Virus record (IMG/VR): IMGVR_UViG_3300031787_007614
Coordinates: 62,001-126,000 of that record
Strand: one strand, 5' to 3'
Length of the DNA stretch: 64,000 bases
The notes under the pieces were generated by a model. That model made no database searches, was not told where the DNA came from, and worked only from the letters and a program-made list of their open reading frames with translations. Positions 1,042-63,512 of this stretch are shown in pieces. A program made the translations under genes and the position numbers. Position 1 is the stretch's first letter. Every line of letters begins with the position of its first letter.

Positions 1042-1737
1042 TTATTGTTTTTTCACTATGGGCAGAGTTTTCCTAACCATGCCCGGGCATACCATACTCA
1101 GCATGGTTTCATATTGTAGGCTATTGTGCTCGATGTAGTAATAGCTTTCAGTAACATCATTGCGCCACCAATACACCCGTGTTGGCCTAATTTCAATATC
1201 TAAAAATTCTCGCAAACTCTTGCTGGCTGCAACGTCATTGCCCTGGGTGGTTATCCATGCAGCCAGTCGAGACTTTTGTGTTTTGCCAAGTGATCGCCCA
1301 CGGAAATAAGTGCGGTATTGATACTGTGGATTTTTTAATAAAATTGTATCAGGTGGCAAATTGAGTTCTGCTCGTTTGAGATCTACAGACTCAATCCAAT
1401 CGCATGCCATCAATCGACCATGCAAGCCAAGATTGTTTGTGTACACTGTGAGATAATTGTTGAAAAACACCATTTTCTTTGGGGGAGTTTCTGCTGCCAA
1501 CAGTGCTCGCATGCCTTCTAAATTGTCACAACAGCGTGTGGTAAATTTGCTTATAAATTTTTCGCCATAGCGTTGGTAATGAGAATTTCTACTAGCTTCG
1601 TACTCCATTCTCACGCGAATGTGTGACTGCATTTTCTTTTGATCAAGACTGCGAATACACCCAATTTCGTCCTGCTGCCAGGTCATGGCATATTCATATG
1701 CGTTGTAGTACAACGAACTACGCGATTCACTTCTCAT
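1042..1737 (-). CDS. hypothetical protein
   Basis: 231-aa ORF overlapping the end of clpA. Confidence 0.7.
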   Translation of the reverse strand: MRSESRSSLYYNAYEYAMTWQQDEIGCIRSLDQKKMQSHIRVRMEYEASRNSHYQRYGEKFISKFTTRCCDNLEGMRALLAAETPPKKMVFFNNYLTVYTNNLGLHGRLMACDWIESVDLKRAELNLPPDTILLKNPQYQYRTYFRGRSLGKTQKSRLAAWITTQGNDVAASKSLREFLDIEIRPTRVYWWRNDVTESYYYIEHNSLQYETMLSMVCPGMVRKTLPIVKKQ

Positions 1738-4009
1738 TGTCCACCACTATAATTCCATCAACATTTACACTTGCAATCACTTCCACAGGTGCGTCCGCTT
1801 GAACATCAAACACAATTTTGTCCGCCACAACATCCGCAGTGATAGTACAATCACGCAAGCGATCAAACAGGATCTTCTTGCTCAACGGCACACGAATCAG
1901 TTCATCAATCTTCCTCGAGAGTGGTCGCGCACCCAGCTTCGAATCATAGCCCTTGTCAGCAAGCAGGTCAACTGCGCCTTCGGATAAGTTGAGACGTATA
2001 CCTTTTGCAAGCAAACTCGTTTTGAGTTCATCCACAAACTTGACCACAACTTTCTTGATTGCCAAAGTATCCAGCTTGGAGAATTTAACAATTTGGTCGA
2101 TTCTGTTGCGTAGTTCAGGCTTGAAAAACTCTTTGAGAGCTCGGTCGTCCTCACCAGTCTTTTCAAAGCTGCCAAAGCCAATGTTGTTTGCTTCACTGTC
2201 CCGTGCTCCTAAGTTTGAAGTCATGATAATGATGGTATTCTTGCAGTTGGCTTTCTTGCCGTTCGAACTGGTAATAACACCTTCATCCAGCATCTGCAAC
2301 AAGATGTTGGTAACATCAGGGTGCGCCTTTTCAATCTCATCAAACAATATTACTGCGAAGGGATTCTTGCTGATGTCAGAGATCAGTTTGCCGCCACCTA
2401 CATTGCCATCTTCAAATCCCACATAACCCGGAGGCGCACCAATAAGGCTGCTGACTGAATGACGCTCTTGGAATTCACTCATGTCATATTTCAGCAGTTT
2501 CATATCCAAATTGTCACTCAACAGTCGTGCTAGTTCTGTTTTACCTGTGCCTGTTGGGCCCAAGAACAAGAAACTCGCCATGGGCTTTTTGTCATTGGCA
2601 ATGCCAGCAAAGTTGATGTACACACGTTCCAGCACTGAATCAACTGCTGAATCTTGTCCGTACAATTTCTGCTTGATGTTGCCTTCAAGATCCACAATCT
2701 TAGCTGAACGTTCGTTTTGCAGTTTGTCTGTGGGCACACCAGTCACACGAGTCAACTGTTCTTCAATCATGGCCTTGGTAACTACTACTGTGCCCAGATC
2801 TTTCACACGCTCTCTAGCACAGGCTGCATCAATCAAGTCAATTGATTTGTCAGGATTCTTACGATCGTGTATGTAACGATTGGCCAGTTCCACAGCCGCA
2901 GTCATTGCTTCAGTTTCAATCAGCACATTATGAAACGTTTCGAGCCGGGGAGATAGACCAATAAGAATCTGCTCCGTGGTTGCAGTATCTGGTTCATCAA
3001 TTGACAAGCGGTAGAATCTGCGCATGAGTGCGCGATCTTTCTCAAATGATTCATAGTATTCTTCCCAGGTGGTCGACGCCACAACTTTCAAGTTGCCTTT
3101 GGTAATAGCAGGTTTCAGCATGTTAGCAAAGTCAAGTGAACTGTTAGAGCCTGAACCTGCGCCACGCATGGTGTGTGCTTCGTCAATGAACAAGATACAT
3201 TTCTTCTTGGTTTCAAGAGCAGCTATTACTGCTTTGAATTTTTCTTCAAACTCACCGCGATACTTTGATCCTGCCAACAATGACCCAATTTCCAGGCTCC
3301 ACACTTCGTGATCCTTAAGAAACTCTGGCACACGACCAGCCACAATTTCCTGTGCTAGTCCTTCCACAATGTGTGTTTTGCCCACACCAGGATCACCTAC
3401 CATCAGCACGTTGGCTTTGAAACGGCGTGCCAGTGTGGTGACCATTTCTTGAACTTCTGTGGCTCGCCCAATCATGGGCTCCAGACGATTGCCGCGAGCC
3501 GCACCTGTGAGATCTGTACAGTACTCAGTGAGTATTTCTGTGGCCTGTGCTTGACTCAGCTTGGCGTCTGAGTGAGTGTAGGTCTTTTGCCAATGATCCA
3601 CAAACTCCTGTTTCTTCACACCATACTTCAACAAGAAGTAGTGTGCATGACTGTTGGTTTCTGCCATGATTGAAAGATACACATCAATCACAGTGAGTGT
3701 TCTGCGTCCAGTAAACATGACCTGTACATTGGCACGATTGAAAATGCGTTCCAGTGCAGTGGTCTTTCGAGGTTGTATATCTGCGCTTTTACTCACAATA
3801 GAAATCAAGCTGTTGAGGTAGCTGTCTACTTCTTGATCCAGCATGCCAGAGTCGGTGCCAAATTTGTCCAGAGTTTTTCTAAATGGCTGGTGCCGTATCA
3901 GGGCCAACAGCAAATGTTCTGTGGTCACGTATTCGTGACTTTTGGAACGAGCCAATTCAATGGCGTCTTCTACGATACTTTCGAGTTCAGAATGTTGTGA
4001 CATGGGCAT
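1727..4009 (-). CDS. clpA: ATP-dependent Clp protease ATP-binding subunit, ClpA-like
   Basis: Clp N-domain (HEYVTTEHLLLAL), two AAA modules (GDPGVGKT / LFIDEAH; GPTGTGKT / LFDEIEKAH), IGF loop (NNIGFGS), FKPELRNRID, GARPL; 760 aa with no ClpB middle domain. Confidence 0.93.
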   Translation of the reverse strand: MPMSQHSELESIVEDAIELARSKSHEYVTTEHLLLALIRHQPFRKTLDKFGTDSGMLDQEVDSYLNSLISIVSKSADIQPRKTTALERIFNRANVQVMFTGRRTLTVIDVYLSIMAETNSHAHYFLLKYGVKKQEFVDHWQKTYTHSDAKLSQAQATEILTEYCTDLTGAARGNRLEPMIGRATEVQEMVTTLARRFKANVLMVGDPGVGKTHIVEGLAQEIVAGRVPEFLKDHEVWSLEIGSLLAGSKYRGEFEEKFKAVIAALETKKKCILFIDEAHTMRGAGSGSNSSLDFANMLKPAITKGNLKVVASTTWEEYYESFEKDRALMRRFYRLSIDEPDTATTEQILIGLSPRLETFHNVLIETEAMTAAVELANRYIHDRKNPDKSIDLIDAACARERVKDLGTVVVTKAMIEEQLTRVTGVPTDKLQNERSAKIVDLEGNIKQKLYGQDSAVDSVLERVYINFAGIANDKKPMASFLFLGPTGTGKTELARLLSDNLDMKLLKYDMSEFQERHSVSSLIGAPPGYVGFEDGNVGGGKLISDISKNPFAVILFDEIEKAHPDVTNILLQMLDEGVITSSNGKKANCKNTIIIMTSNLGARDSEANNIGFGSFEKTGEDDRALKEFFKPELRNRIDQIVKFSKLDTLAIKKVVVKFVDELKTSLLAKGIRLNLSEGAVDLLADKGYDSKLGARPLSRKIDELIRVPLSKKILFDRLRDCTITADVVADKIVFDVQADAPVEVIASVNVDGIIVVDNEK

Positions 4010-36867: not shown

Positions 36868-37113
36868 ATGTTTACCATACAAGAACTTACACAGAAATTT
36901 CATGCGCTTGATGACAGCACAAAAGACAAGGTGTTTGAACAGGTGACCAAGAACGCAGCTCAGTATAATGAAATTATACCCAACGTCCCATTATTTCTTT
37001 ACATACTGCAAGGTGATGGTGGTGTTCCTGTGTGGGCCAAAAACAGTTCAATTCTGTTGCAGTATAAGGCTTGGGCATCAAACCCAAAAAATCGATCTAA
37101 ACTGCAAAGCTAG
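36868..37113 (+). CDS. hypothetical protein
   Basis: start MFTIQE directly after the upstream stop, AAGGA RBS. Confidence 0.65.
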
Positions 37114-37417
37114 ATCCACAACCACAGGTTGAAGAAGCCTGTGGATTGTTGATTACAAAACTGGCACTCATCAAATCTTCTTTGTAGTCAATTGATGCGC
37201 CGTTGAGATATTGCATGCTCATAGCATCCACAACTACCTTGACTTCATCATATGCAAAGTCAAAATCATCTTCGTTTTTGGTTTCTTCAAATGTGAATCC
37301 ATAACTGAATCCTGAACAGCCGCCGCCCTGCACAAACACTCTGAGCATGAGATTAGGGTTATTTTCTTCAGCAATCAGTTCGCGTAATTTTGACACAGCA
37401 CCAGTTTCTAAATTCAT
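37097..37417 (-). CDS. erpA: iron-sulfur cluster insertion protein ErpA (HesB/IscA family)
   Basis: [34 protein letters not shown]; start MNLETG coupled (TAATG) to SOD. Confidence 0.9.
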
Positions 37418-37965
37418 TATAGTCTTTCGTTGCAAACGTCCCAGTTGATTATCTTCCACACGTTGTTGAGATAACCTTCTTTGTCCGCTTGATAATCTAA
37501 CGCCCATGCATGTTCCCACCAGTCTACCAAACAGCAGATGTCTGTGCGTACAGCATGATTGGCGATGGTCTTGATGTCACCACCAGTACTCAAATACACC
37601 CAACCTGATCCTTGGATCTTCATGGCAGTTTCTTTGAACTGCTCCTTGAAGTCTTCCCAAGTTTTAAATTTTTCTTCTATCAACGCGAGTACTGCGCCGC
37701 GGGGACGGTTGGTAGCTTTAGGAGCCCTAAGCTGAGGGAAGAACTTATTGTGTAAAAAACTGCCAGCACGATTAAAATCCGCATTGCCTTCTCCTGCGTT
37801 GTAACGCTTTGCATAGCCTTTGGCCAAGTGGTCAAAGTGATAGTCTATTGTGGCTCGGCTCATCACAGGCTCAAGATCCTTGATGCCGTAGGGCAAAGGA
37901 GTGGTTTCCAGTTTTGCCGGACGTGTGCTTGCTTCTACAAGATTGATGTGATTGCGAATTTCCAT
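37417..37965 (-). CDS. Fe/Mn superoxide dismutase
   Basis: LPY..LEP.MS, IDYH, FLHN, QGSGW, DWWEHA; all four metal ligands appear present. Confidence 0.9.
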
Positions 37966-37973
37966 AAACTTAT

Positions 37974-38975
37974 TTATTTTGCAATGTCGGCAATTTCTGC
38001 AATCTCAGTTATTTCGCCAGTGTAAAAAAACACCAGTTTTTCGTTAGGGGTTTTATAACAACTTTTTTGTGGGTCCACCCAAGGTACTAGTTTTTCTAAA
38101 TCCAGTGGTTCTTCAATGTTGTAGACCCATGCTTGTACAGGTTCGTTTTTCAATCTAACTGAATCTCTGTTCCACTGCCCCAACAACATGCCATAACTAA
38201 AACTCCACTCTTGTGGTTTTCGATGCACAAAATTTACTTTCCAAACTTCTGGATTGTATCTAATCAATGGCACAGTTTCTTCAGTGCAATGCACTTCGAT
38301 GGTGATGGGTGTGGGTTTTTGTTCAGTCCAGTCTTTACAAAAACGACGCCACCAGGTTTGTATTTGCATGCCCGTGGCCAACTGTGTTTGTAAAAACTGA
38401 GGAATGTATTCTGGATCGTATTTGGTATGACGAACAATTGTACGGTCCAGGCGCATTTGTTGAGCCACATCATCAAAATGCATTTCTATTCCATGGTCAA
38501 CATTGTCTAGTCCCAACATCTGTTCAAAATGTTCAGTTGACTCGATCAACGTACCAGGTCCCCATTGCGTAAAATTTGATTTAGGAGTACCGTACACAAT
38601 TACTGGAATATTTTCAGCTGGCAATCCATTCAAGATCAACGCTGCCAGTCGATTGTTGCCCACAGTAACATCGCCGGTGTCACACATCACAAATGGAGGA
38701 AAGAAAAACTTTTCTCGGCGGTACTTGTATGTCATGTCGTTTATTTTGCTAATTTTTCTTGACGCATCAGCATCATCAGACTCTATTGCAGTTTTGACCA
38801 CACTGTTGAAACAAGTTTCTACATATGAATCATAAAACGCCTGGGGAATCCCAGTCAAATAATACATTTTGAGATCAGGCATGGTTTCAAGCCAGCCGGT
38901 TCCATATTTGCGAACTATGTAGCTTGGACCGTTTTTTTGATCGGTAAGATATTGTATGCTTTCTTTTACTGACAT
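37974..38975 (-). CDS. hypothetical protein with a possible ParB/Srx-like N-terminal motif
   Basis: PPFV...VGNNRLAAL...IPVIV; start MSVKES at 38975. Confidence 0.6.
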   Translation of the reverse strand: MSVKESIQYLTDQKNGPSYIVRKYGTGWLETMPDLKMYYLTGIPQAFYDSYVETCFNSVVKTAIESDDADASRKISKINDMTYKYRREKFFFPPFVMCDTGDVTVGNNRLAALILNGLPAENIPVIVYGTPKSNFTQWGPGTLIESTEHFEQMLGLDNVDHGIEMHFDDVAQQMRLDRTIVRHTKYDPEYIPQFLQTQLATGMQIQTWWRRFCKDWTEQKPTPITIEVHCTEETVPLIRYNPEVWKVNFVHRKPQEWSFSYGMLLGQWNRDSVRLKNEPVQAWVYNIEEPLDLEKLVPWVDPQKSCYKTPNEKLVFFYTGEITEIAEIADIAK

Positions 38976-39643
38976 TATTGTTCCCTCTTTGTTGGCATTA
39001 ATCGATAACCTAGACCTTTGACAAATTCCCATGACATTGAGTCTGCTTCAAAGTCTTCTCGCATGGCTGTGCCACCATGCAGTTTGCAAAAACTATATTC
39101 TGTTGCGTAAAAATTCATTCCAGTAAAATAACTTATGTTTGCTAATCTTTCAAGCCCCAGGCCATGATTGTGAGTACACATCTGCCAACTGTGCCCGGCC
39201 ACTATCCAATGTCTACAAGGCTCCGGTAACAAGGAAGTGTGATGTAAAAAATCAACATCATTGTTAAAAAAAATACTTTGTTCGTTGTCTAACAAATATC
39301 GTTGCACAAGATGTGATGTTTGCTCATGTTGTCCTGAACTTTTTAAGATATTTAATGCAACCCAAAGATCTGCGTCTGTTGGTGTTTCTGTTGGATTGTT
39401 TCGTAGATCATTATTGTAAGTCCAACAGTACCGCTGAAAAGTGTTACGCAGACTCCGATCGTTCCAGTCAAATCGATTGTGTGTTAGGCTGTTGACTATA
39501 CATTTGAAATTGTATTCTCGCAACTGATGTATGAGATTTGCATAAAAATAGTCTTTAAAAAATTGCCCGCCTGCAGGCTCCCAACAATCCAACAAGATCA
39601 ATCCATCTACAGTTGGTATTGTGTTGGTTTTTGAAACTATCAT
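38975..39643 (-). CDS. divergent cysteine-hydrolase (isochorismatase-fold)-like protein
   Basis: GLILLDCWE and IVAGHSWQMC motifs; family call tentative. Confidence 0.5.
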   Translation of the reverse strand: MIVSKTNTIPTVDGLILLDCWEPAGGQFFKDYFYANLIHQLREYNFKCIVNSLTHNRFDWNDRSLRNTFQRYCWTYNNDLRNNPTETPTDADLWVALNILKSSGQHEQTSHLVQRYLLDNEQSIFFNNDVDFLHHTSLLPEPCRHWIVAGHSWQMCTHNHGLGLERLANISYFTGMNFYATEYSFCKLHGGTAMREDFEADSMSWEFVKGLGYRLMPTKREQ

Positions 39644-39861
39644 TTGCGTCTTGTGATACGACCTCGTGATAGATCGTATGGGCTGAATACAATTTCTACT
39701 CGATCGCCAAGAAGAACTTTGATGTTGTTGGTCCGCATACGCCCTGACAGGTATCCAATCACCACATTATCTATGCTATCTAATCTGATGCGAAACATAG
39801 CGGCAGGCAAAATCTCCTCTACTGTTCCTTCCATACTGATTGTTTCTTCTTGTTTGGCCAT
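39640..39861 (-). CDS. infA: translation initiation factor IF-1
   Basis: MAKQE.I.MEGTVEEILPAAMFRI...SGRMR.NNIKVLLGDRVE...SPYDLSRGRIT.R. Confidence 0.95.
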   Translation of the reverse strand: MAKQEETISMEGTVEEILPAAMFRIRLDSIDNVVIGYLSGRMRTNNIKVLLGDRVEIVFSPYDLSRGRITRRK

Positions 39862-39873
39862 ATAAGTGTTTAC

Positions 39874-40260
39874 TTATTCGAATTTCAATTCCGCAGTGAT
39901 CTTCTTCAGTCGATCAAAACGGAAACTGCGCCATTCTTGTTTTTCTAGGTCAAACACACGAAGGCTATGTGGATCAGGTTCCTTGCGCGGTTTTTTGCTT
40001 TCTTTAACAATACCATCCACTGGTAATACTGGAGTTATTGCAGCTGAGGGAATGAAATCCCAGTTGAGTGTGCAAAGCATTTCGCGATCGGTGCCATCTG
40101 CTTTGACAAAGGTCACTTTGATGGTACTTTTTTGTAGCAGGCTCTTGATCCAATCACGGATGATGGCCTTGTTGACATCATCTGCCTCTTGATATTGTGT
40201 GCCTGGCGCTCCCTTGAGCAGTCGCACCACTTCTTGTTTTTCCCATGTAGCCATATCCAT
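39874..40260 (-). CDS. WYL-like / SH3 beta-barrel protein
   Basis: VTFVKADGTDREMLCTL, VFDLEKQEWRSFR; start MDMATW after GGAG. Confidence 0.7.
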   Translation of the reverse strand: MDMATWEKQEVVRLLKGAPGTQYQEADDVNKAIIRDWIKSLLQKSTIKVTFVKADGTDREMLCTLNWDFIPSAAITPVLPVDGIVKESKKPRKEPDPHSLRVFDLEKQEWRSFRFDRLKKITAELKFE

Positions 40261-40298
40261 TTGGAGTTCTCCTCTATAAGTTAATTGACGTTTTTTCT

Positions 40299-41459
40299 TC
40301 ATGCTAAAAATTTTGTCAATGCCAGCACCACATTGGTACCACCAAATGCAAAGCTGTTGTTCAAACACACATCTTGTTCATGCTCAACAACCTCAGTTGG
40401 TAGGTACACACCTTCAGGAATTGCAGGATCAGGATCAGTTAGATTCCAATTGGGAATAATTTGATTTGTTTTTAGCACAGCCAAACAAGCCAGCAGTTCC
40501 ATGGCTCCAGAGTTGCCCAACAAGTGCCCGTGCAGTGCCTTGGTTGAACTGATGGGAACGCCACTGCCAAATACTTTTTGTATACTACTTAATTCAACCA
40601 AGTCTCCAACAGGTGTGCCTGTGCCATGTGCGTTGATATAGGTCACACGACTTGGATCAATACCATTCAGTGCAGATTGCATGGCAGAGATCTGACCTTG
40701 TTCACTGGGCTTGGTTAGAGTTTCGCTGCCACAACTGATACCATATCCCACAATTTCTGCATGTATCACAGCATTTCGAACCAGCGCATGATCCAAACTT
40801 TCTAGAACATAAACAACACTGCCTTCGCCCAAGATGATGCCATCTCGTGTGGCACTGAATGGTGCAGACTTTGTGCCCATGGCCCGCATGGCCCGCCATT
40901 GGTCCACTAAAATGGGACTGAGGCAAAATTCGGCGCCGCCGGCTGCCATAACGCTGACCTCGCCATGTTTGATGGCTTTGTATGCTTCTCCAATAGACAC
41001 ACTGCTGGAAGCACATGCCGCTGTGTGTGTGAACACAGGACCTGTGATGTTGTCTTTTGACGCAATAAAACTGGCTGCGCCACTGCTCATTGATGATACC
41101 AAACTGTTTGGACGCACTCGACCTTTATCCTGGAATTCAAGAATGGTGTTGTTCACTTCGTAGGCAGCACCTGCGCCTGTACCAATGTAAACACCATCCA
41201 CACTGGTTTTTGCATCTGCTTTTGCTTGTTGGTATGCCAGCATGGTGGCGCGAGCAAACAAACTTGTGGCCGCAGTATCATAACGATCAAATTGATCATT
41301 GATGTTGCTGTGTCCTAATCCAACCTTGGCAGTGTTGGCCTGGAGAGTTTCACTAAAAATGATGCCTGATGTTCCTGCATACATGGCAGCAACAACTTGA
41401 TCATAACTATTGCCCAATGGAGTAATGCAACCCACTCCTGTAATAACTACTCTATTCAT
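40299..41459 (-). CDS. beta-ketoacyl-ACP synthase (FabF / NodE-like)
   Basis: RVVITGVG, TAACASS (Cys), INAHGTGT (His), KALHGHLLG (His), NSFAFGG. Confidence 0.95.
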   Translation of the reverse strand: MNRVVITGVGCITPLGNSYDQVVAAMYAGTSGIIFSETLQANTAKVGLGHSNINDQFDRYDTAATSLFARATMLAYQQAKADAKTSVDGVYIGTGAGAAYEVNNTILEFQDKGRVRPNSLVSSMSSGAASFIASKDNITGPVFTHTAACASSSVSIGEAYKAIKHGEVSVMAAGGAEFCLSPILVDQWRAMRAMGTKSAPFSATRDGIILGEGSVVYVLESLDHALVRNAVIHAEIVGYGISCGSETLTKPSEQGQISAMQSALNGIDPSRVTYINAHGTGTPVGDLVELSSIQKVFGSGVPISSTKALHGHLLGNSGAMELLACLAVLKTNQIIPNWNLTDPDPAIPEGVYLPTEVVEHEQDVCLNNSFAFGGTNVVLALTKFLA

Positions 41460-42205
41460 GTTTTGATCAGTCGAATAAATTGTGCCGCATAGTCAACTTC
41501 CCACCACTGCTCACGTTGATTCCACCGTTGTGGATTGGCATGATGATTGTTGTGCCATTCTCCAATGACTAGGGCTAGATAGCTATTTGAACTGGTATCC
41601 TTTGTGGCATGATTCTGATAGGTGGTCAAACCGTGAGTGTGACACACGGTGTTCACAAAACCCATGGCCAACAATGCTCCTGCATTAGCAATACTATAGC
41701 ACAAAAACAATACGGGGTCAATGGCCAATAGCACCAATGCAAACGTCAAAACAATCAATGCGTAATAATTGTGAGTGAACTTCATCCAAGGATCTCTTAG
41801 ATCTCTAATGCCATCCCACATGCTGAGATTGGACAAGTTCCAATTGAACAGTATCACATTGAGAATTCCAATGTCTGGAGCATGTGGATCTTGTGCAGTG
41901 TCTGTGTGTACATGATGGGCTCGGTGGATGATGGAATAACCAACTGGTGACCCAAAACAGGCCAAACAAGAACTCACACACAAAAATGCATGCCAAAACG
42001 GAGTGACTGTGTAACTGCGGTGTGAGAAGTATCTATGCAATCCTGCATGGTGTGAGATGAACAACAAAAAACTGTAAAAGAACACAAGGTATATTGCGTA
42101 CCACCAATGCCATTGATATACCAATACTGGTATGCCCAGCATCGCAACAATCAATTGAACTGAGAGAACCTGTTTGGTTCTGTCAGGATCACCTTGCCAA
42201 ATCAT
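41456..42205 (-). CDS. membrane fatty acid desaturase (delta-9-like, His-box family)
   Basis: HRYFSH, HRAHH, DPH, EWHNNHH boxes; hydrophobic segments. Confidence 0.92.
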   Translation of the reverse strand: MIWQGDPDRTKQVLSVQLIVAMLGIPVLVYQWHWWYAIYLVFFYSFLLFISHHAGLHRYFSHRSYTVTPFWHAFLCVSSCLACFGSPVGYSIIHRAHHVHTDTAQDPHAPDIGILNVILFNWNLSNLSMWDGIRDLRDPWMKFTHNYYALIVLTFALVLLAIDPVLFLCYSIANAGALLAMGFVNTVCHTHGLTTYQNHATKDTSSNSYLALVIGEWHNNHHANPQRWNQREQWWEVDYAAQFIRLIKT

Positions 42206-42480
42206 TTTTTAACACGATTGACCGGATCGTTCACAGCTTCGGTCAAACTGTCAATGATTTCTGCCAAGTTAGCTGGCTGACTCATGTCAGCAGAGTTTAC
42301 TTTGATGCCAAGTTCATCTTCAACATCAAATATCATTTCAATCACAGACAGTGAATCAATCTTGGGATTGATATTTTGCAAGTCTGCAAGAGGTGCATCC
42401 TCTGCAAAGTTGTCAATGTCTAGATCGTACTGTTTTTTGCAAATCCTCAAAATAACTGTTTTGACTTCGTCGCGTGTCAT
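42202..42480 (-). CDS. acyl carrier protein
   Basis: acidic 92 aa; IDSLSVIEMIFDVEDELGI phosphopantetheine-attachment motif. Confidence 0.9.
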   Translation of the reverse strand: MTRDEVKTVILRICKKQYDLDIDNFAEDAPLADLQNINPKIDSLSVIEMIFDVEDELGIKVNSADMSQPANLAEIIDSLTEAVNDPVNRVKK

Positions 42481-43747: not shown

Positions 43748-44062
43748 TTACTTAAAAAGTATTAAGGCCATCAAAACCGCTTGCACAATGAATCCTGCAC
43801 CCACTGTGATGATGTTGAGCATGTCTTTGAGCACCACTGCCCGTAAGAACAGCAGGACCAGGCCGGCCCACATAAACAGCACAATGTCCAAACTGGGTGT
43901 GCGATCACTAAGTCCGGTCATCAGCGCCAAAAGTGTGGGAATGGTTGCGGCATGAATCACAATGGCCGCTAGCCAACCTAGTGTTTCTGCGGAGATTTTT
44001 GGCAAGTGATCTTTCAGCCAAAGTTGCAGGATTTCGGCTGTGTGTTGCAAGTCAAATTTCAT
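43748..44062 (-). CDS. 3-TM membrane protein
   Basis: three hydrophobic helices; ETLGW...IP motif. Confidence 0.7.
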   Translation of the reverse strand: MKFDLQHTAEILQLWLKDHLPKISAETLGWLAAIVIHAATIPTLLALMTGLSDRTPSLDIVLFMWAGLVLLFLRAVVLKDMLNIITVGAGFIVQAVLMALILFK

Positions 44063-44667
44063 CGTTTATCTCCGTAAAAAATGTGTCGGCCAATCTTTTC
44101 AATACGCGGTTTGCCCCAGTTGGGATTCACATAGTCTGCATGATAATATAGGGCGTTTTTCAAGCCAGGCAATCGGAAGTTTTCCAACAGCACCTTCTTG
44201 GCCACTTCTTCGCTTTCGCGCCACAGTGGAGTATAAACTGCTCGTGTTTTGTGATTGGTTTCGCAGTACCAGGAGAACTGGCATACTACCTTTTCATAAA
44301 ACACATTTTTTTGATAAACCACGCCACACACGGAATCAGGAAAACGTCCAGATTCCACACGGTTCATTGTGACTTGAGCCACTGCCACTTTGCCTTCAAA
44401 AGGCTCTGAGGCTGCTTCCCAGTAGATGTTACGGGTAAGGCAGTCCAGTTGTCGAGTGCGCTCGGCAGCAGACACATAGCCTGCTGGTAGATTTCCTGTT
44501 TGTTCGCGCAAGGCATCCAGTCGGCTTTGACACACTGCAATCACAGTGGCAACGACCAACCAGAAGCCTAGGGCTTTCAGGATGCGTGAGCTCCATGTGG
44601 CCCACCTGTTGAGAGAGATAGTTTTTTCTTTCATGGTAGTTTTACTTACTGGAATGGTTGCTATCAC
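44059..44667 (-). CDS. cell wall hydrolase (SleB / Hydrolase_2 family)
   Basis: CLTRNIYWEA.SEP.EGKVAVAQVTMNRV, CQFSW, YYHADYVNPNW, IGRHIFY. Confidence 0.9.
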   Translation of the reverse strand: MIATIPVSKTTMKEKTISLNRWATWSSRILKALGFWLVVATVIAVCQSRLDALREQTGNLPAGYVSAAERTRQLDCLTRNIYWEAASEPFEGKVAVAQVTMNRVESGRFPDSVCGVVYQKNVFYEKVVCQFSWYCETNHKTRAVYTPLWRESEEVAKKVLLENFRLPGLKNALYYHADYVNPNWGKPRIEKIGRHIFYGDKR

Positions 44668-44721: not shown

Positions 44722-45534
44722 TCAAAACTTGCAGACCGGTATTGGCAGCATCTTGTGCATGTTTCTAGCACGAATGTCTTGGTACCGCTTGAGTTTTTTT
44801 CTATCATCTGCTGACAATTTGGCGCTGCCAGGCATGTCGGAGTCCACAGCCTTGCATCGTTGCAAAAAGTCCAAGGCCATCATGCGCTCAAGATCTGGGT
44901 AGCTCATGCCCAGTTGACCTTCGTCTGTGCGCCCATCATCCCACAAGCCGTCGGTGGGTGCGGCATCAATGATTTCTTGTGGCAGCCCAAACTCTCTACC
45001 CATATCCCATACTTCTGTTTTCATGCAGTCGCCGATGGGGCTGATATCCACACCACCATCACCATACTTGGTAAAGAAGCCCACACCAAAGTCTTCCACT
45101 CGGTTGCCGGTGCCTACTACAATACCACCATGGCATTGTGCAATTTGGTACAAGGTCATCATACGCAATCTAGCACGTGAGTTGGCAAAAGCCAGTTCAA
45201 CTTGTGATGCATTTTCTGCATCACAAAATGGCACAGTTTTCTTTTCAAACGCAGAGAACACAGACGTCAAATCCATGCTCATGTGTGTGACGTTTTTGTA
45301 GCGTTCCATCAACCAGGTAGCCTGCATTGAACTGCGATTGTCCAGCTTCTTGTTTTGGCGGATGGGCATTTGCACCACAATGGTTGTGAGTCCTGTTTCG
45401 GCGCATAATGCACTCACAACAGATGAGTCAATCCCACCTGAGATCCCTACAACTAGTGTAGAGATCTTGTTTTTTGTTGCGTATTGTCGGATCCATTTTA
45501 CAATGTGCTTGATACGTTGCTTTGGTGTTACCAT
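44722..45534 (-). CDS. nadE: NH3-dependent NAD+ synthetase
   Basis: GISGGIDSS, NSRARLRM, GTGN, GFFTKYGDGG, PTDGLW, DEGQLG; start MVTPK at 45534. Confidence 0.93.
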   Translation of the reverse strand: MVTPKQRIKHIVKWIRQYATKNKISTLVVGISGGIDSSVVSALCAETGLTTIVVQMPIRQNKKLDNRSSMQATWLMERYKNVTHMSMDLTSVFSAFEKKTVPFCDAENASQVELAFANSRARLRMMTLYQIAQCHGGIVVGTGNRVEDFGVGFFTKYGDGGVDISPIGDCMKTEVWDMGREFGLPQEIIDAAPTDGLWDDGRTDEGQLGMSYPDLERMMALDFLQRCKAVDSDMPGSAKLSADDRKKLKRYQDIRARNMHKMLPIPVCKF

Positions 45535-46064
45535 TTGACCTCCGGCTTGGGCATTGCTTTTAGTTTGTTCCATACTTCTGCTTTTTCCTTGCATTTCTTT
45601 TCCAGCTTGCGATAGCGTTCTCCCAGTCGGCGCAGATCATCCCACTCTCGTTCCAGTTCAGGATTTGGTGTGAGAATGTTCAGGCGTTCTTCAACCTTTT
45701 CCATCCAGTCTTTAAGACTCTTGCCATTGATGTCAAGATCAGCTTTGTCCCCTCTAAGACTCATCTTGCCACCTTGTTCAATCGTAGATCCTACTGCACT
45801 GTAATTTGCACCAATTGTAAAACTGCCTGTGGTTGTGTTGTTTGTGGTCCAAACAGTGTTGGAGCCAGTGGCACCGTTGAGTCCACCAATGGTGTATCCG
45901 CCAGTGATGTTGGTGGTATCACTTATGATTACAGTTGGCATGGTATTTGCATCAAATGCACTTACCAATGGGGGAATAGCACCGTAAGAAGGGTCGGTTG
46001 TTAGGTCGTTATATTCGTATTCTTTGAGGTTGAGGTTTACCCAGTCGTTTTTATAAGTTGCCAT
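45528..46064 (-). CDS. hypothetical protein
   Basis: 178 aa; Thr-rich N-terminus and coiled-coil C-terminus. Confidence 0.65.
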   Translation of the reverse strand: MATYKNDWVNLNLKEYEYNDLTTDPSYGAIPPLVSAFDANTMPTVIISDTTNITGGYTIGGLNGATGSNTVWTTNNTTTGSFTIGANYSAVGSTIEQGGKMSLRGDKADLDINGKSLKDWMEKVEERLNILTPNPELEREWDDLRRLGERYRKLEKKCKEKAEVWNKLKAMPKPEVKW

Positions 46065-46204
46065 GTTCCGTCTTTGTTGTCAATCCACTGAACGGTGTCG
46101 CCTACGGCCCAGCCTAGTTCGGCGCACAATTCAGTGCCAAGATCCAACAACAGTTCTTCAGGGTTGTTGGGATCCTCAATTACCTGTACAGTCCTAGTCA
46201 TCAT
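46037..46204 (-). CDS. AbrB/MazE-like small DNA-binding protein (not in ORF track)
   Basis: MMTRTVQVIEDPNNPEELLLDLGTELCAELGWAVGDTVQWIDNKDGTWQLIK; LGW..GD.V.W signature. Confidence 0.65.
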   Translation of the reverse strand: MMTRTVQVIEDPNNPEELLLDLGTELCAELGWAVGDTVQWIDNKDGTWQLIKTTG

Positions 46205-46889
46205 TTTTGATGCCAAACAGTTGCAGTAGGTTCACAAAAATGTTGATGAAGTCCATGTACAATGTGAGCGCACCTAAGATTTCTGCAGGTGTATCTGCGT
46301 CATCTGTGGATACCATTTCACGGATTTGTTGTGTGTCGTAGGCTGTGAGGCCCAGGAATATAATGATCGCAATGGCAGAGATAACCATGGTCATCACTGA
46401 ACTGCCAATAAAGATGTTCACAATACTTGCAATGATTATGGCAACAAGTCCTATGATCAAAAATTGCCCAAAGCTCTCCAAACTGCGTTTGGTAAAGTAT
46501 CCGTAAAAACTCATGGTAGCAAACAGAATGGCACTTGAAGCAAACGCCATTACCAAACTACCTGTGGTATAAACATGCACAATGGCGCCCATGCTCAGGC
46601 CCATTACACCTGCGAATCCATGCAACAGTCCCACAGCCACTCGGTGTGGTGGGTTGTTGGCCAGTGCATAACTAACTCCAAATACTGCTACCAAGGGCAA
46701 GAACAGCGTGATCCATTTCATCACTCCAGTGAAAAAGAATGCCATTGCGGCTGGACTGGATGCTACTAATCCAGCTACTACGGCACTGGTCACAATGGCC
46801 ATGAGCATATGATTGTACACACGCAACATGGCCGAATTGACTTCACCTGCTGTTCTGTAAGATGTTTCCTGTATGGTTGCTTCGTACAT
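46194..46889 (-). CDS. Bax inhibitor-1 / YccA family membrane protein
   Basis: about 7 TM helices; RVY..M, YGY.TKR.L, TAYDTQ.I, GAL.LY.DFIN.F. Confidence 0.9.
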   Translation of the reverse strand: MYEATIQETSYRTAGEVNSAMLRVYNHMLMAIVTSAVVAGLVASSPAAMAFFFTGVMKWITLFLPLVAVFGVSYALANNPPHRVAVGLLHGFAGVMGLSMGAIVHVYTTGSLVMAFASSAILFATMSFYGYFTKRSLESFGQFLIIGLVAIIIASIVNIFIGSSVMTMVISAIAIIIFLGLTAYDTQQIREMVSTDDADTPAEILGALTLYMDFINIFVNLLQLFGIKNDD

Positions 46890-47031
46890 GATGTTCTCCT
46901 CGAAGTTTACTATAATGGTGAGCCCGAGCAAATTTGTTTTGAATCAATTGCTCGCGTTGCTCTCGGGACATAAACATGGGCCAAGATTCCTCATGTGGTT
47001 TATGTAATTGCTGTTCCTTATCCTTGGTCAT
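46843..47031 (-). CDS. hypothetical protein
   Basis: 62-aa ORF, ATGA-coupled to the upstream gene. Confidence 0.45.
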   Translation of the reverse strand: MTKDKEQQLHKPHEESWPMFMSREQREQLIQNKFARAHHYSKLRGEHHVRSNHTGNILQNSR

Positions 47032-53093: not shown

Positions 53094-53339
53094 TTATGCC
53101 CAGTGTAGCACAAACGCAAAGAAGTCGCGGTCAGAGTCAAAGTAAAAAATGTATCTGCCAGGGCGGTGATCCGAACTGCCATCAATCAGTTGCCAACGCC
53201 ACTCATCTATCAGTTCAGTTTTGCACCAAGCCAGCACACGATCCAGTTCGCCGTAGGGTTTGAGAATTTCACGAGCATAGCGGAAGCTGTCCCCTGGGCG
53301 TATTTCTTGTGAAGAATGATGTCTTAGCAGGTTCATCAA
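53094..53339 (-). CDS. small protein of the F-x-L-x-W C-terminal motif family
   Basis: ends FYFDSDRDFFAFVLHWA. Confidence 0.7.
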   Translation of the reverse strand: MMNLLRHHSSQEIRPGDSFRYAREILKPYGELDRVLAWCKTELIDEWRWQLIDGSSDHRPGRYIFYFDSDRDFFAFVLHWA

Positions 53340-54154
53340 TAGTATGTATTGGCAAATTCCTGTGGTTGCAAATTTTGATCCAGCACATGATTGTACATGA
53401 TGTTTTTAACTGTGTTCAATCGATCAATTTTTGTTCTACTGCCCAGTACCACAATCACATACTGTTGTCCACGTTGATTGGCAACCAAGCCCACACACCA
53501 CCCAGCAGCCGAAGTCAGTCCAGTTTTGCTTACCACAATGTTGTCGAATGTGAACAAGATGTTGCCCGAAGTGTGGTCTAACCGAATGGTTCGGATTTGT
53601 TTTTTGTGCCGTGTTTCCAAGGCCACTTGTTTTTTAGTACTGGTCTCACGGATAAACCAATAGTTGGAAGCCAAAGTTATCATTGCAGCCACATCATGCA
53701 CTGTGGAGGTGTTGGCAGCACCCAGTCCCGAAGCATCTTCAAACTGTGTGTGTTTGAGATCCCAAGCCTGAGCTTGACTGTTCATTCGTGCAATAAAAGC
53801 AGTTCTGCCGCCAGGATAATCTTCTGCTAGAGTTTCGGCAGCCGCGTTGTCAGATTTTACCAACATGGCTTCCAGCAGTTGTTCTCTAGTGTATTGTTGC
53901 CTGGGCAAATAACTGCCCACACGCTTGGTCAGTGTGAGTCGTCTGCTGAGATCCTTGTCATAGTCCAAGGCAACCATGGCAGTCATGATCTTGGTGATTG
54001 ACGCAATGGCTCGCACACGATCCGCATTGCGAGAGAGTTCAATATGATTGGTACTGGTGTTTAGTAGTAGTACTGATTCTGAATTTGGTGTGGGCCGGAC
54101 AGGCTTGGCCACAGCCACATTTGCCATCATCGCAAGTATCAAAATCCATCGCAT
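53336..54154 (-). CDS. peptidase S11 D-Ala-D-Ala carboxy/endopeptidase (PBP7-like)
   Basis: signal peptide; SxxK (ASITK), SDN, KTG. Confidence 0.9.
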   Translation of the reverse strand: MRWILILAMMANVAVAKPVRPTPNSESVLLLNTSTNHIELSRNADRVRAIASITKIMTAMVALDYDKDLSRRLTLTKRVGSYLPRQQYTREQLLEAMLVKSDNAAAETLAEDYPGGRTAFIARMNSQAQAWDLKHTQFEDASGLGAANTSTVHDVAAMITLASNYWFIRETSTKKQVALETRHKKQIRTIRLDHTSGNILFTFDNIVVSKTGLTSAAGWCVGLVANQRGQQYVIVVLGSRTKIDRLNTVKNIMYNHVLDQNLQPQEFANTYY

Positions 54155-59538: not shown

Positions 59539-59976
59539 GTGACTATGTTGCATACCATAACAACACCCGATGACGGTTTGATCACATTGATCAAAGATGA
59601 CCCAGTGCGTCCTGAAATTCCAGCCAGTGATCGTGTGAATTCAAACTCTAGAATTTACGTTTGGAAACAGGATGACCAACCTGCGGCCGTGGTGTGTGTG
59701 AAGTTTTTGGAAAGCATTCCAGCCGCAGTAGACGACATGGTTGACTTGGTCGGGAGTGCCACAACTGCGGTATTTTACACTATTTGGTCATACACTGCTG
59801 GCGCGGGTCGTACATTGATCTTGGAAGCTACTAAAAGCATTGAATCAGAGTTTCCGGGCATTGAAACTTATGTGACTCTAAGTCCAAAGACCGAAATGGC
59901 TCGAAAATTTCACCTGAAGAATGGTGCTCGAGAACTGCGAGAAAATTCTACCACCGTTAATTACATCTATAAGTAA
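59539..59976 (+). CDS. minimal malonyl-CoA decarboxylase-like GNAT-fold protein
   Basis: TAVFYTIWS, GAGR.LI, EFPGIETYVTLSP, FHLKNGA motifs; TATAAATA upstream. Confidence 0.6.
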   Translation: MTMLHTITTPDDGLITLIKDDPVRPEIPASDRVNSNSRIYVWKQDDQPAAVVCVKFLESIPAAVDDMVDLVGSATTAVFYTIWSYTAGAGRTLILEATKSIESEFPGIETYVTLSPKTEMARKFHLKNGARELRENSTTVNYIYK

Positions 59977-61990: not shown

Positions 61991-62218
61991 GAATGCTTTC
62001 ACAAGCCCCGTAAGTCCAATTGCTACACTTACAAGATTCACAAACATCTGTGGTTTATTTGCAACACGGATGCACCATATCAGAAACAGTATGGTTCCTA
62101 TAAAAAATGTAAGGATATTGTAGGGATAGGCCGCGGGCCCGATAGCGTTGAGGCTGTGCCCTGCTACAATAAACACGGCACCTGCCCACTGCAAAATTTC
62201 GTTAGTATCTAATTTCAT
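61985..62218 (-). CDS. small 3-TM membrane protein (probably leaderless)
   Basis: three hydrophobic segments; stop lies inside the repeat. Confidence 0.7.
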   Translation of the reverse strand: MKLDTNEILQWAGAVFIVAGHSLNAIGPAAYPYNILTFFIGTILFLIWCIRVANKPQMFVNLVSVAIGLTGLVKAFG

Positions 62219-62775: not shown

Positions 62776-62876
62776 TTGCTAAATTTTTTAATCGTGTGTT
62801 TGAACTGTTGGTAGCCTGGGGCGACACTGTGCATGAGTACAGAATGAGCCGCGCCAGTCGTACCTGGTACTATTAA
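62772..62876 (+). CDS. 34-aa protein (not in ORF track)
   Basis: [34 protein letters not shown]; ATGA-coupled. Confidence 0.5.
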
Positions 62877-63460
62877 TCTCGTTTGATTAATATTTTATCA
62901 GCAAGGCCATATTCAACTGCTTCGCCAGCAGTCATGAAATTGTCACGTTCCATATCAGCTTTGAGTTGTTTGTGGGGTTTGCCAGTGTGTTTGACATAGA
63001 TATCAGTCAACACAGTTTTCCAACGCAATAGTTCTCGAGCTTGAATTTCCACGTCTGTGGCCTGACCCGATGCGCCGCCCAGGGGTTGATGGATCATGTG
63101 GCGTGCATTGGGCAGGATGTAGCGATTGCCCTTGTCGCCAGCAGCGGCCAACAACGAGCCCATGCTGGCAGCCTGCCCCATCACAATAGTGTGAATTTTG
63201 GGCTTGATAAAGTTCATGGTATCGTAAATGGCCATACCTGCTGTGACTGATCCGCCGGGTGAGTTGATGTACAAGCTGATGGCTTTGTCGGGGTTGTCAC
63301 TTTCCAAAAACAATAACTGCGCACAGATCAAGCTGGCTGTGTGTTGGGTGACTTCTCCGTCCAGCATGATCACACGATCTTTGAGCAAGCGGCTGTAAAG
63401 GTCGTAACTGCGTTCGCCTCGGGAAGTGTTTTCGATAACAATTGGCACTAGATTTGACAT
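62873..63460 (-). CDS. clpP: ATP-dependent Clp protease proteolytic subunit
   Basis: [28 protein letters not shown] (Ser), MIHQP (His), ERD (Asp); start MSNLVP. Confidence 0.96.
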
Positions 63461-63483
63461 GGGGTCTCCTGGTTGATTGCATA

Positions 63484-63512
63484 AGTATAGCATTATTCTC
63501 GGAAGAAAACAA
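63484..63512 (-). promoter_or_regulatory. sigma70-type promoter for clpP
   Basis: TTGTTT-N17-TATACT. Confidence 0.5.

Follow-up and report, generated by a model that had tools for sequence, protein, structure and literature searches.

A conserved acyl carrier protein-desaturase-ketosynthase cassette in uncultured phages and its possible role in lipid tailoring

We analyzed 64,000 nucleotides of the IMG/VR virus record IMGVR_UViG_3300031787_007614 (positions 62,001 to 126,000 of that record; this whole stretch is called the window below), which derive from an uncultured giant freshwater-type phage. On the minus strand, positions 40299 to 42480 hold three open reading frames (ORFs), located where an original prediction made from the sequence alone had placed them, that encode a predicted dedicated type II acyl carrier protein (ACP), an integral-membrane desaturase of the SCD1/DesC type, and a β-ketoacyl-ACP synthase (KAS). 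Their sequences indicate that the three genes are inherited together among phages, and we tentatively propose that they constitute a lipid-tailoring module, a private branch of the type II fatty acid synthesis (FAS II) of the host. Pfam matches, alignments, and coordinates agreed with the predicted three ORFs, their gene identities (Table 1), their intact active sites, and their coupling by ATGA overlaps.

Scans of IMG/VR with the window KAS and with a KAS alignment, combined with ORF mapping, showed that no fewer than 20 distinct contigs of uncultured viruses carry the cassette, and further contigs from ENA and JGI do so as well. The trio is thus conserved in other phages, as the original prediction had left to a comparison of gene order. 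Over the whole range from 100% to approximately 40% KAS identity, the genes follow one another as ACP-desaturase-KAS, and their starts overlap or abut. In the lineage of the window (KAS identity, 60 to 93%; GC content, 42 to 47%, except 36.5% in L025), the cassette is followed by genes for the initiation factor IF-1, a superoxide dismutase (SOD), and an Fe-S_biosyn protein, with a WYL_2 gene in the closest relatives. In T4-like contigs (KAS identity, 40 to 51%; GC content, 34 to 38%), it lies between a PD-(D/E)XK nuclease gene, in some contigs with PhoH, and the genes (SleB)-gp33-gp59-gp32, and it is always upstream of gp33-gp59-gp32, gp33 being the coactivator.

The number of desaturase genes varies between cassettes. 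Most contigs have one, which in L034 and L035 is placed after the KAS gene, while L039 has three and L015 and L016 have four; L007, L032, L036, and L041 harbor ACP and KAS alone. Because of this variation, ACP and KAS represent the constant core and the desaturase a variable insert (0 to 4 copies). In the T4-like contigs L015 and L016 (2771 to 7799), the ACP gene is followed by four tandem divergent desaturase paralogues, the KAS gene, and a gene for a putative metal-dependent hydrolase (PF10118); L039 (4438 to 8784), also T4-like, has the same arrangement with three paralogues. In L015, a rubrerythrin/ferritin-like gene is found 1.3 kb upstream of the ACP gene. PF10118 has no solved structure or solved relative, and its top atlas match has a weak structural likeness to heme-oxygenase-like diiron proteins. 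Modules without KAS also occur: in L200 (4201 to 5997) and L201 (2241 to 6290), two to three desaturase genes of the phage clade are followed by an ACP gene (PF00550, E = 2e-14). The neighbors in L200 include radical-SAM, 2-oxoglutarate-Fe(II) oxygenase, and Asp/Arg-hydroxylase genes. Furthermore, lone desaturases of the phage clade lie between the genes for the large and small subunits of ribonucleotide reductase (RNR), by an Asp/Arg β-hydroxylase gene, in L195 to L199 (e.g., L196, 2356 to 6720, and L195, 6944 to 8176), and two such desaturases stand beside a hexapeptide transferase in L205. In L195, the desaturase is immediately followed by a thioredoxin gene; L195 also codes for a member of the isocitrate-lyase family (PF00463, E = 2e-101), which is unusual for a viral contig. 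Since L195 shares a 172-kb contig with a complete cassette (L037), a lone desaturase is no proof of ACP-independent activity.

The pairwise identities of the three proteins, compared over 11 cassettes, correlate with r values of 0.87 to 0.94 (the pairs are not independent), a pattern of joint inheritance. Compared with a relative at 93% KAS identity, the ratio of nonsynonymous to synonymous substitution (dN/dS) of the ACP, desaturase, and KAS genes was 0.17, 0.14, and 0.11, respectively; by these values, all three are under purifying selection and kept functional. The GC content of the cassette is like that of its surroundings, with no sign in the composition of recent acquisition. The ATGA stop/start overlaps are found at 42202 to 42205 (ACP/desaturase) and 41456 to 41459 (desaturase/KAS), and a third, at 40299 to 40302, joins the KAS stop to the ATG of the WYL_2 gene. 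Such four-base overlaps occur in 8 of the 78 adjacent minus-strand ORF pairs of the window and, being common in this genome, were rejected as a mark of special coupling: they reflect tight packing rather than a special link. Nor did WYL_2 qualify as an additional, fourth gene of the module, because its coupling to the KAS gene is not conserved. Indeed, it starts 68 nucleotides downstream of the KAS gene in L207 and is separated from it by another gene in L023, and it is probably only a neighbor. A scan for promoters and terminators between 37 and 46.5 kb gave numbers close to those expected by chance (18 versus 16.6 and 10 versus 9.4, respectively).

We then considered each protein. In the KAS, Cys149, His278, Lys307, His312, and the gatekeeper Phe372 align with residues 164, 304, 336, 341, and 401 of Escherichia coli FabF, and the catalytic Cys, both His, the Lys, and the gatekeeper Phe are invariant in an alignment of 18 phage sequences. 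Sixty-nine solved FabF/FabB-type relatives were matched at E < 1e-30. The protein falls below every NCBIfam cutoff (288 bits versus 494 for the FabF model TIGR03150), and PHROGs v4 has no family for it. A search of 5.8 billion proteins returned approximately 90 KAS clusters of 380 to 399 amino acids (aa) with 42 to 96% identity and then, beyond a gap, cellular KAS of 402 to 420 aa that are at most 41% identical to the phage KAS. In a maximum-likelihood tree, the phage KAS are monophyletic (support of 100, stem of 1.21), and four NodE sequences, taken from rhizobial symbiosis plasmids (the one of Sinorhizobium meliloti matches records annotated hsnB), form a clade of their own apart from them (support of 100). 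The housekeeping references, namely, FabF of E. coli, Staphylococcus aureus, and Clostridium acetobutylicum and FabB of E. coli, lie across a branch with a support of 98 from the phage clade, the NodE sequences, and the 30 top-scoring cellular matches. In approximately unbiased (AU) tests, which included only three housekeeping FabF and in which the groups were picked after seeing the tree, forcing the phage clade together with NodE (p-AU of 0.022) or with the three FabF references (p-AU of 0.0045) was rejected. The KAS is thus not a housekeeping FabF, as argued by its FabF model score, this last test, and its phage gene context, and the nesting among housekeeping enzymes that the original prediction had allowed for was not observed.

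The same prediction had called the KAS NodE-like because of a tryptophan in its QWRAMRAM motif. This residue, W188, aligns with Phe203 of the E. coli FabF precursor (Phe202 of the mature protein), Phe201 of FabB, and Trp201 of S. meliloti NodE; the Phe at this FabF position presumably lines the acyl pocket. As predicted, the alignment has Trp in the phage enzymes (23/23) where all four FabF/FabB references have Phe. However, Trp is also found in 4/4 NodE and in 30/30 of the nearest cellular KAS, and since it is common to all of these, it marks a wide subfamily and not NodE. Additional similarities to the rhizobial NodF/NodE system, in which a dedicated ACP and KAS produce the unsaturated acyl chains of Nod factors, are an ACP gene directly upstream of a FabF-like KAS gene and a place on the same side of the 98-support branch, but an upstream ACP is not exclusive either: two of the three cellular top KAS examined adjoin their own upstream PP-binding gene, the third having no ACP alongside. 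Furthermore, the phage KAS is only 34 to 36% identical to NodE, no better than to FabF/FabB, and its HGH motif and gatekeeper Phe are replaced in NodE by HAH and, usually, Met. In BLAST, the window KAS scored 176 to 201 bits against NodE, 181 to 211 bits against FabF/FabB, and 231 to 276 bits against the cellular top matches. No nod genes are found near the cassette, the setting of which is a phage genome. NodFE is not known to use an oxygen-dependent desaturase. The chains that it makes are α,β-unsaturated (PMC9048898). Taking the separate clade, the AU test, and the low identity together, we rejected the KAS as a NodE orthologue; what stood of the original comparison is the Trp and the dedicated ACP upstream.

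The best cellular scores belong to uncharacterized bacterial ACP-KAS pairs (e.g., P0099 and P0104; 36 to 41% identity). These share the Trp, HGH, and FAFGG motifs with the phage KAS, and their KAS genes start at or beside the stop of the PP-binding gene. In contrast to the phage cassette, they have no desaturase, and the phage clade is set apart from them by its long stem. By sequence, the phage KAS belongs with KAS enzymes that are paired with a dedicated ACP, and this is the sound part of the analogy with NodE. In L184 (5681 to 7233) and L185 (5740 to 7230), which are clearly bacterial contigs, the pair lies with genes for a HAD phosphatase (PF06888), a class III aminotransferase, and an α/β hydrolase, in a conserved and apparently uncharacterized neighborhood.

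The best solved relatives of the desaturase are human and mouse SCD1 (4zyo and 4ymk). In good agreement with this, an AlphaFold2 model (pLDDT of 92, pTM of 0.88) had SCD1 as its top four and only significant Foldseek matches (TM score of 0.75 to 0.78, E = 1e-8), so that the protein is predicted to have the SCD1 fold. All nine SCD1-type histidine ligands are present (H57, H62, H94, H97, H98, H189, H218, H221, and H222) and invariant in 15 phage copies, paralogues included, as are the boxes HRYFSH, HRAHH, and HNNHH around them. SCD1/DesC-type desaturases usually have approximately 290 to 400 aa, with full cytosolic regions. The metagenomic search gave 41 desaturase clusters of 167 to 268 aa (nearly all 221 to 268 aa) at 32% identity or more, followed by cellular desaturases of 294 to 369 aa at 33% identity or less, and ESM Atlas clusters of such short length are 60 to 97% viral. 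The desaturase thus belongs to a short, mostly viral clade.

To look for cellular counterparts, we scanned the genomes of 185,579 species (one genome each) with a seven-sequence desaturase alignment. The best relatives were only 22 to 31% identical and came from Bacteroidota, cyanobacteria, and Myxococcota, and none of 80 had an ACP or KAS within 6 kb. Because of this, we rejected an origin of the cassette as a copied bacterial operon among those representatives. A plasmid collection searched for polyyne/JamB-type desaturases gave only acyl-CoA desaturases with approximately 25% identity. In Dolichospermum sp. LEGE 00240 (L098, 2169 to 6036), four tandem desaturase genes with approximately 31% identity to the phage ones, among their nearest cellular relatives, were found, and phmmer with the phage ACP and KAS detected neither on this 7.3-kb contig; these desaturases may belong to a gene cluster for a lipid natural product.

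The third protein, the ACP, has a pI of 4.26 (4.1 to 4.6 among phage ACPs) and weak matches to NCBIfam ACP models. The Ser of its DS(L/M) motif is kept in 16/16 aligned phage ACPs, and ahead of DSL, five inserted residues are found that are specific to the phage clade. The acidic helix II is similar to the one in E. coli AcpP, which fits the use of host FAS II partners. ACPs are already known from phages, sometimes together with an ACP synthase (PMC3037559), and phrog_5934 is a known phage ACP family in PHROGs.

We tentatively hypothesize that the module would work as follows. The phosphopantetheinyl transferase (PPTase) of the host, AcpS, would convert the phage ACP to its holo form, and host FabD would load it with malonyl. 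The phage KAS would then take a chain from the host acyl-ACP pool and extend it on the phage ACP, each elongation cycle being completed by host FabG, FabZ, and FabI. The SCD1-type desaturase, using O2 and a host electron donor, would introduce a cis double bond, most simply into the ACP-bound chain, and host acyltransferases would place the product in membrane lipids, so that in the course of infection, the envelope would change in the length and unsaturation of its chains. What we infer here are all substrates, the ACP-tethered desaturation, the position of the double bond, where the product ends up, and how it benefits the phage. As the cassette recurs in many T4-like phages, phages probably reshape the lipids of their hosts by means of it.

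Such a module would lean on the host. In Pfam sweeps of the window, we found no PPTase, ferredoxin, rubredoxin, flavodoxin, thioesterase, or acyltransferase and no FabD, FabG, FabZ, or FabI, and there was no fatty acyl-AMP/ACP ligase (AMP-binding family) among the cassette neighbors or in the window sweep. These sweeps covered the neighbors and 66 further window ORFs (25 of 32 families are listed in one sweep), the largest window ORFs were scanned against PHROGs only, and the window is 64 kb of an approximately 364-kb genome. The original prediction, which had seen no PPTase, acyltransferase, or thioesterase next to the cassette and concluded that host enzymes would be needed, was right in this. 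Its description of the cassette as self-contained did not hold, because these partner genes were not found in the window sweeps and AcpS, FabD, FabG/FabZ/FabI, acyltransferases, and an electron donor of the host would be required.

The proposal of a private FAS II branch draws on the intact catalytic residues, the SCD1 fold, the kept gene order, the codivergence, and the low dN/dS. Additionally, ACP is the common partner, as both ACP-KAS without desaturase and desaturases-ACP without KAS occur, and the nearest cellular KAS, as well as NodE behind NodF, adjoin their own carrier gene and no fabD-fabG-acpP operon. Dependence on a cognate ACP has precedents among SCD1-like membrane desaturases, namely, JamB/JamC (bioRxiv 10.1101/291195) and the polyyne desaturase triad (PMC9828172).

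Several points weigh against this proposal. Enzymes of the SCD1 type also act on acyl-CoA, as SCD1 does, or on acyl-lipids, as DesC does. The PPTase, electron donor, thioesterase, and acyltransferase mentioned above were not found in the 64-kb window, and desaturases of the phage clade occur without an adjacent ACP between RNR genes (L195 to L199). Cyanophage DesC-like desaturases, furthermore, act on C16 in yeast, where a phage ACP is absent (PMC5776448). The main alternative, which we consider less likely than the private branch, is that the genes have separate lipid functions and simply lie side by side, with the desaturase acting, as cyanobacterial DesC or the cyanophage vFADs do, on chains already in membrane glycerolipids or on acyl-CoA and raising fluidity and with KAS and ACP independently boosting or sustaining host elongation. 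Phage-clade desaturases without adjacent ACP or KAS (L195 to L199, L205, and one in Pelagibacter phage Mosig), the several phages that have ACP and KAS without a desaturase, and the JGI and NCBI labeling of relatives as stearoyl-CoA/acyl-CoA desaturases would agree with this. However, in most cassettes, the one, three, or four desaturase genes are set exactly between ACP and KAS with overlapping starts, the three cassette genes codiverge, desaturase-ACP modules exist without KAS, and at least one lone desaturase shares its genome with a cassette (L195 and L037).

It seems unlikely to us that the cassette makes a specialized, ACP-tethered unsaturated fatty acid other than a bulk membrane lipid, in the manner of NodFE, JamABC, or the polyynes, be it for signaling, as a toxin or protectant, or for the acylation of lipid A or a protein. 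The cellular members of the KAS subfamily, NodE included, do pair with a dedicated ACP outside housekeeping contexts. Moreover, the relatives with three or four divergent desaturases, PF10118, and also a rubrerythrin/ferritin-like gene (L015 and L039) recall the polyyne set, in which three desaturases go with an ACP, a hydrolase for release, and ferritin/rubredoxin (PMC9828172). The window, in contrast, has a single desaturase, and near its cassette, we found neither a fatty acyl-AMP ligase nor a thioesterase, an acyltransferase, or a dedicated redox partner; the orthology to NodE was rejected, and PF10118 is without a known function. This explanation is less likely for the one-desaturase version and gains weight for the relatives with three or four. 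An extension of it, which we regard as quite unlikely, is a phage-borne thiotemplated tailoring line tuned by the number of desaturases, in which the versions with three or four would build a conjugated polyunsaturated or polyyne-like chain on the phage ACP, yielding a specialized lipid such as a toxin, a signal, or a modifier of the envelope, and that of the window would be reduced. If true, this would represent a class of biosynthetic pathway not known from viruses of bacteria.

Finally, overproduced FabF blocks fatty acid synthesis in E. coli, and the window also encodes a mini malonyl-CoA-decarboxylase (MCD)-like protein, so that KAS and ACP could circumstantially be seen as sequestering FAS II partners or malonyl units and perturbing or shutting down host lipid synthesis without any product, but this is very improbable because the KAS catalytic apparatus, the Ser of the ACP, and all nine His ligands of the desaturase are strictly kept across deep divergence and under purifying selection, which points to catalysis, and because relatives of the mini-MCD are found in many viral stretches and few of the listed contigs have the cassette.

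Returning to the private FAS II branch, its parts can be compared with known systems. JamB/JamC, TtuB/TtuC, and the polyyne Cay/Pgn systems similarly have an SCD1-fold membrane desaturase beside a small dedicated ACP, a likeness of fold and gene layout, and JamB itself has been modeled on SCD1 (bioRxiv 10.1101/291195). The relatives with three to four tandem desaturases and a ferritin/rubrerythrin-like gene are in this respect polyyne-like. However, in those systems, an acyl-AMP/ACP ligase loads a free fatty acid and a thioesterase releases the product (PMC9828172), whereas in the phage cassette, the KAS stands in for the loader, neither a ligase nor a thioesterase was found, and the desaturases are much shorter (approximately 250 aa). 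Cyanophages also carry auxiliary Δ9/SCD/DesC-type desaturases with three His boxes, but these vFAD-I and vFAD-II are described as single genes close to picocyanobacterial DesC and were not linked to an ACP or KAS (PMC5776448). In addition, fabF appears in lists of auxiliary metabolic genes from viromes (bioRxiv 10.1101/2024.12.22.629985).

The original prediction knew of no such coupled trio in a phage. This is nearly right. None of the papers that we found describes the trio, but one sentence of Zaragoza-Solas et al. (2020, PMC7029224) names fabF and a stearoyl-CoA desaturase among genes found only in putative freshwater pelagimyophages ("Ca. Fonsibacter" myophages), with no mention of an ACP or a cassette and no analysis. 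Our T4-like relatives are plausibly of the kind listed there, and their genomes are of the same type (PhoH, gp33-gp59-gp32, and a GC content of 34 to 38%). The window phage belongs to another lineage, with a GC content of 45%, contigs of up to 364 kb, and no gp32, gp59, or gp33 in the window. In full-text searches of the literature, we found no account of the ACP-desaturase-KAS cassette, of the series of 0 to 4 desaturases, or of a functional test, and neither the phage-only KAS and short-desaturase clades nor the presence of the cassette in a lineage of giant phages was found described.

The assignment of the window to an uncultured large phage follows from several observations. Four IMG/VR viral contigs of 138 to 364 kb are 100% identical to the window over the cassette, the genes around it include tail-fiber proteins and other PHROG matches, PhoH, DnaJ, and radical-SAM proteins, and the ClpA-like ATPase shares no more than 39% identity with its counterparts in jumbo phages such as PA5oct. 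The gene density of the window also backs a phage origin. No terminase or clear capsid gene and no tRNA was found inside the window. Deposited phage genomes gave no DNA match, no desaturase above 28% identity, and no KAS above 35% identity, the KAS matches at or below 35% in such records being mostly host contamination.

The other features identified in the window are listed in Table 1. ClpA-like, ClpP, and DnaJ-domain proteins make up a chaperone/protease set, and the SleB-like, Bax1-I/YccA-type, and PF00768 proteins are envelope related. The SOD and the IscA-like protein might conceivably be linked to the O2-dependent diiron desaturase. Between the IF-1 and SOD genes, two ORFs of 352 and 222 aa without a Pfam family occupy positions 37974 to 39643 on the minus strand. 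In the 93% relative L207, IF-1 is directly followed by SOD and these two ORFs are absent, indicating a recent insertion or deletion. The mini-MCD-like ORF (145 aa, positions 59539 to 59976, plus strand) matches the catalytic domain of malonyl-CoA decarboxylase (PF05292, 35.4 bits; cutoff, 23.2) and PDB entries 4ksf and 4ksa (E = 5e-6) and keeps TLSP and FHLxNGA-like motifs. It has relatives in more than 600 IMG/VR viral stretches, and among the 80 listed, the cassette is present in the four contigs of the window and one other. We rejected it for this reason as a partner of the cassette; by sequence, it looks like a widespread phage "mini-MCD."

Table 1. Features of the window, with their positions and the matches that identify them
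Feature	Position	Strand	Evidence
Predicted ACP, 92 aa, KIDSL motif with the phosphopantetheine-attachment Ser	42202-42480	-	PF00550, 26.4 bits (cutoff 20.8)
SCD1/DesC-type integral-membrane diiron fatty-acyl desaturase, 249 aa	41456-42205	-	PF00487, 36.7 bits (cutoff 29.7)
FabF-type elongating KAS, 386 aa	40299-41459	-	PF00109, E 1.5e-32; PF02801, E 1.6e-29
WYL_2 (Sm-like SH3 barrel), KAS neighbor	39874-40302	-	PF10902, E 2.7e-12
IF-1 homologue, just downstream of the cassette	39640-39861	-	PF01176, E 1.5e-17
Fe/Mn SOD, downstream neighbor	37417-37965	-	Pfam Sod_Fe_C/N
IscA-like Fe-S assembly protein, downstream neighbor	37097-37519	-	Fe-S_biosyn, E 3e-17
ClpA-like ATPase	1727-4009	-	phrog_4871, E 1e-238
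DnaJ-domain protein	within 1-37.5 kb		Pfam sweep
SleB-like cell-wall hydrolase	44059-44667	-	PF07486
NAD synthase (NadE)	44722-45594		
Bax1-I/YccA-type membrane protein	46194-46931	-	PF01027, E 6e-54
D-Ala-D-Ala carboxypeptidase	53336-54154	-	PF00768, E 4e-37
ClpP	62873-63493	-	PF00574, E 1e-81

Auxiliary lipid genes of phages have so far been described singly, as in the case of the cyanophage DesC-like desaturases. What differs here is a multigene module inherited as a unit, with its own carrier protein and with KAS and short desaturases from phage-only clades, spread over abundant uncultured freshwater T4-like phages and one lineage of giant phages. The natural series of 0, 1, 3, and 4 desaturases represents a ready-made experiment, and SCD1-type enzymes of approximately 250 aa with their cognate ACPs could be compact tools for the study and engineering of ACP-dependent desaturation. 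If our proposal is true, phages would not only tweak host lipids but run a private branch of fatty acid synthesis during infection, which would change the view of virocell membranes, lysis, cold adaptation, and carbon flow.

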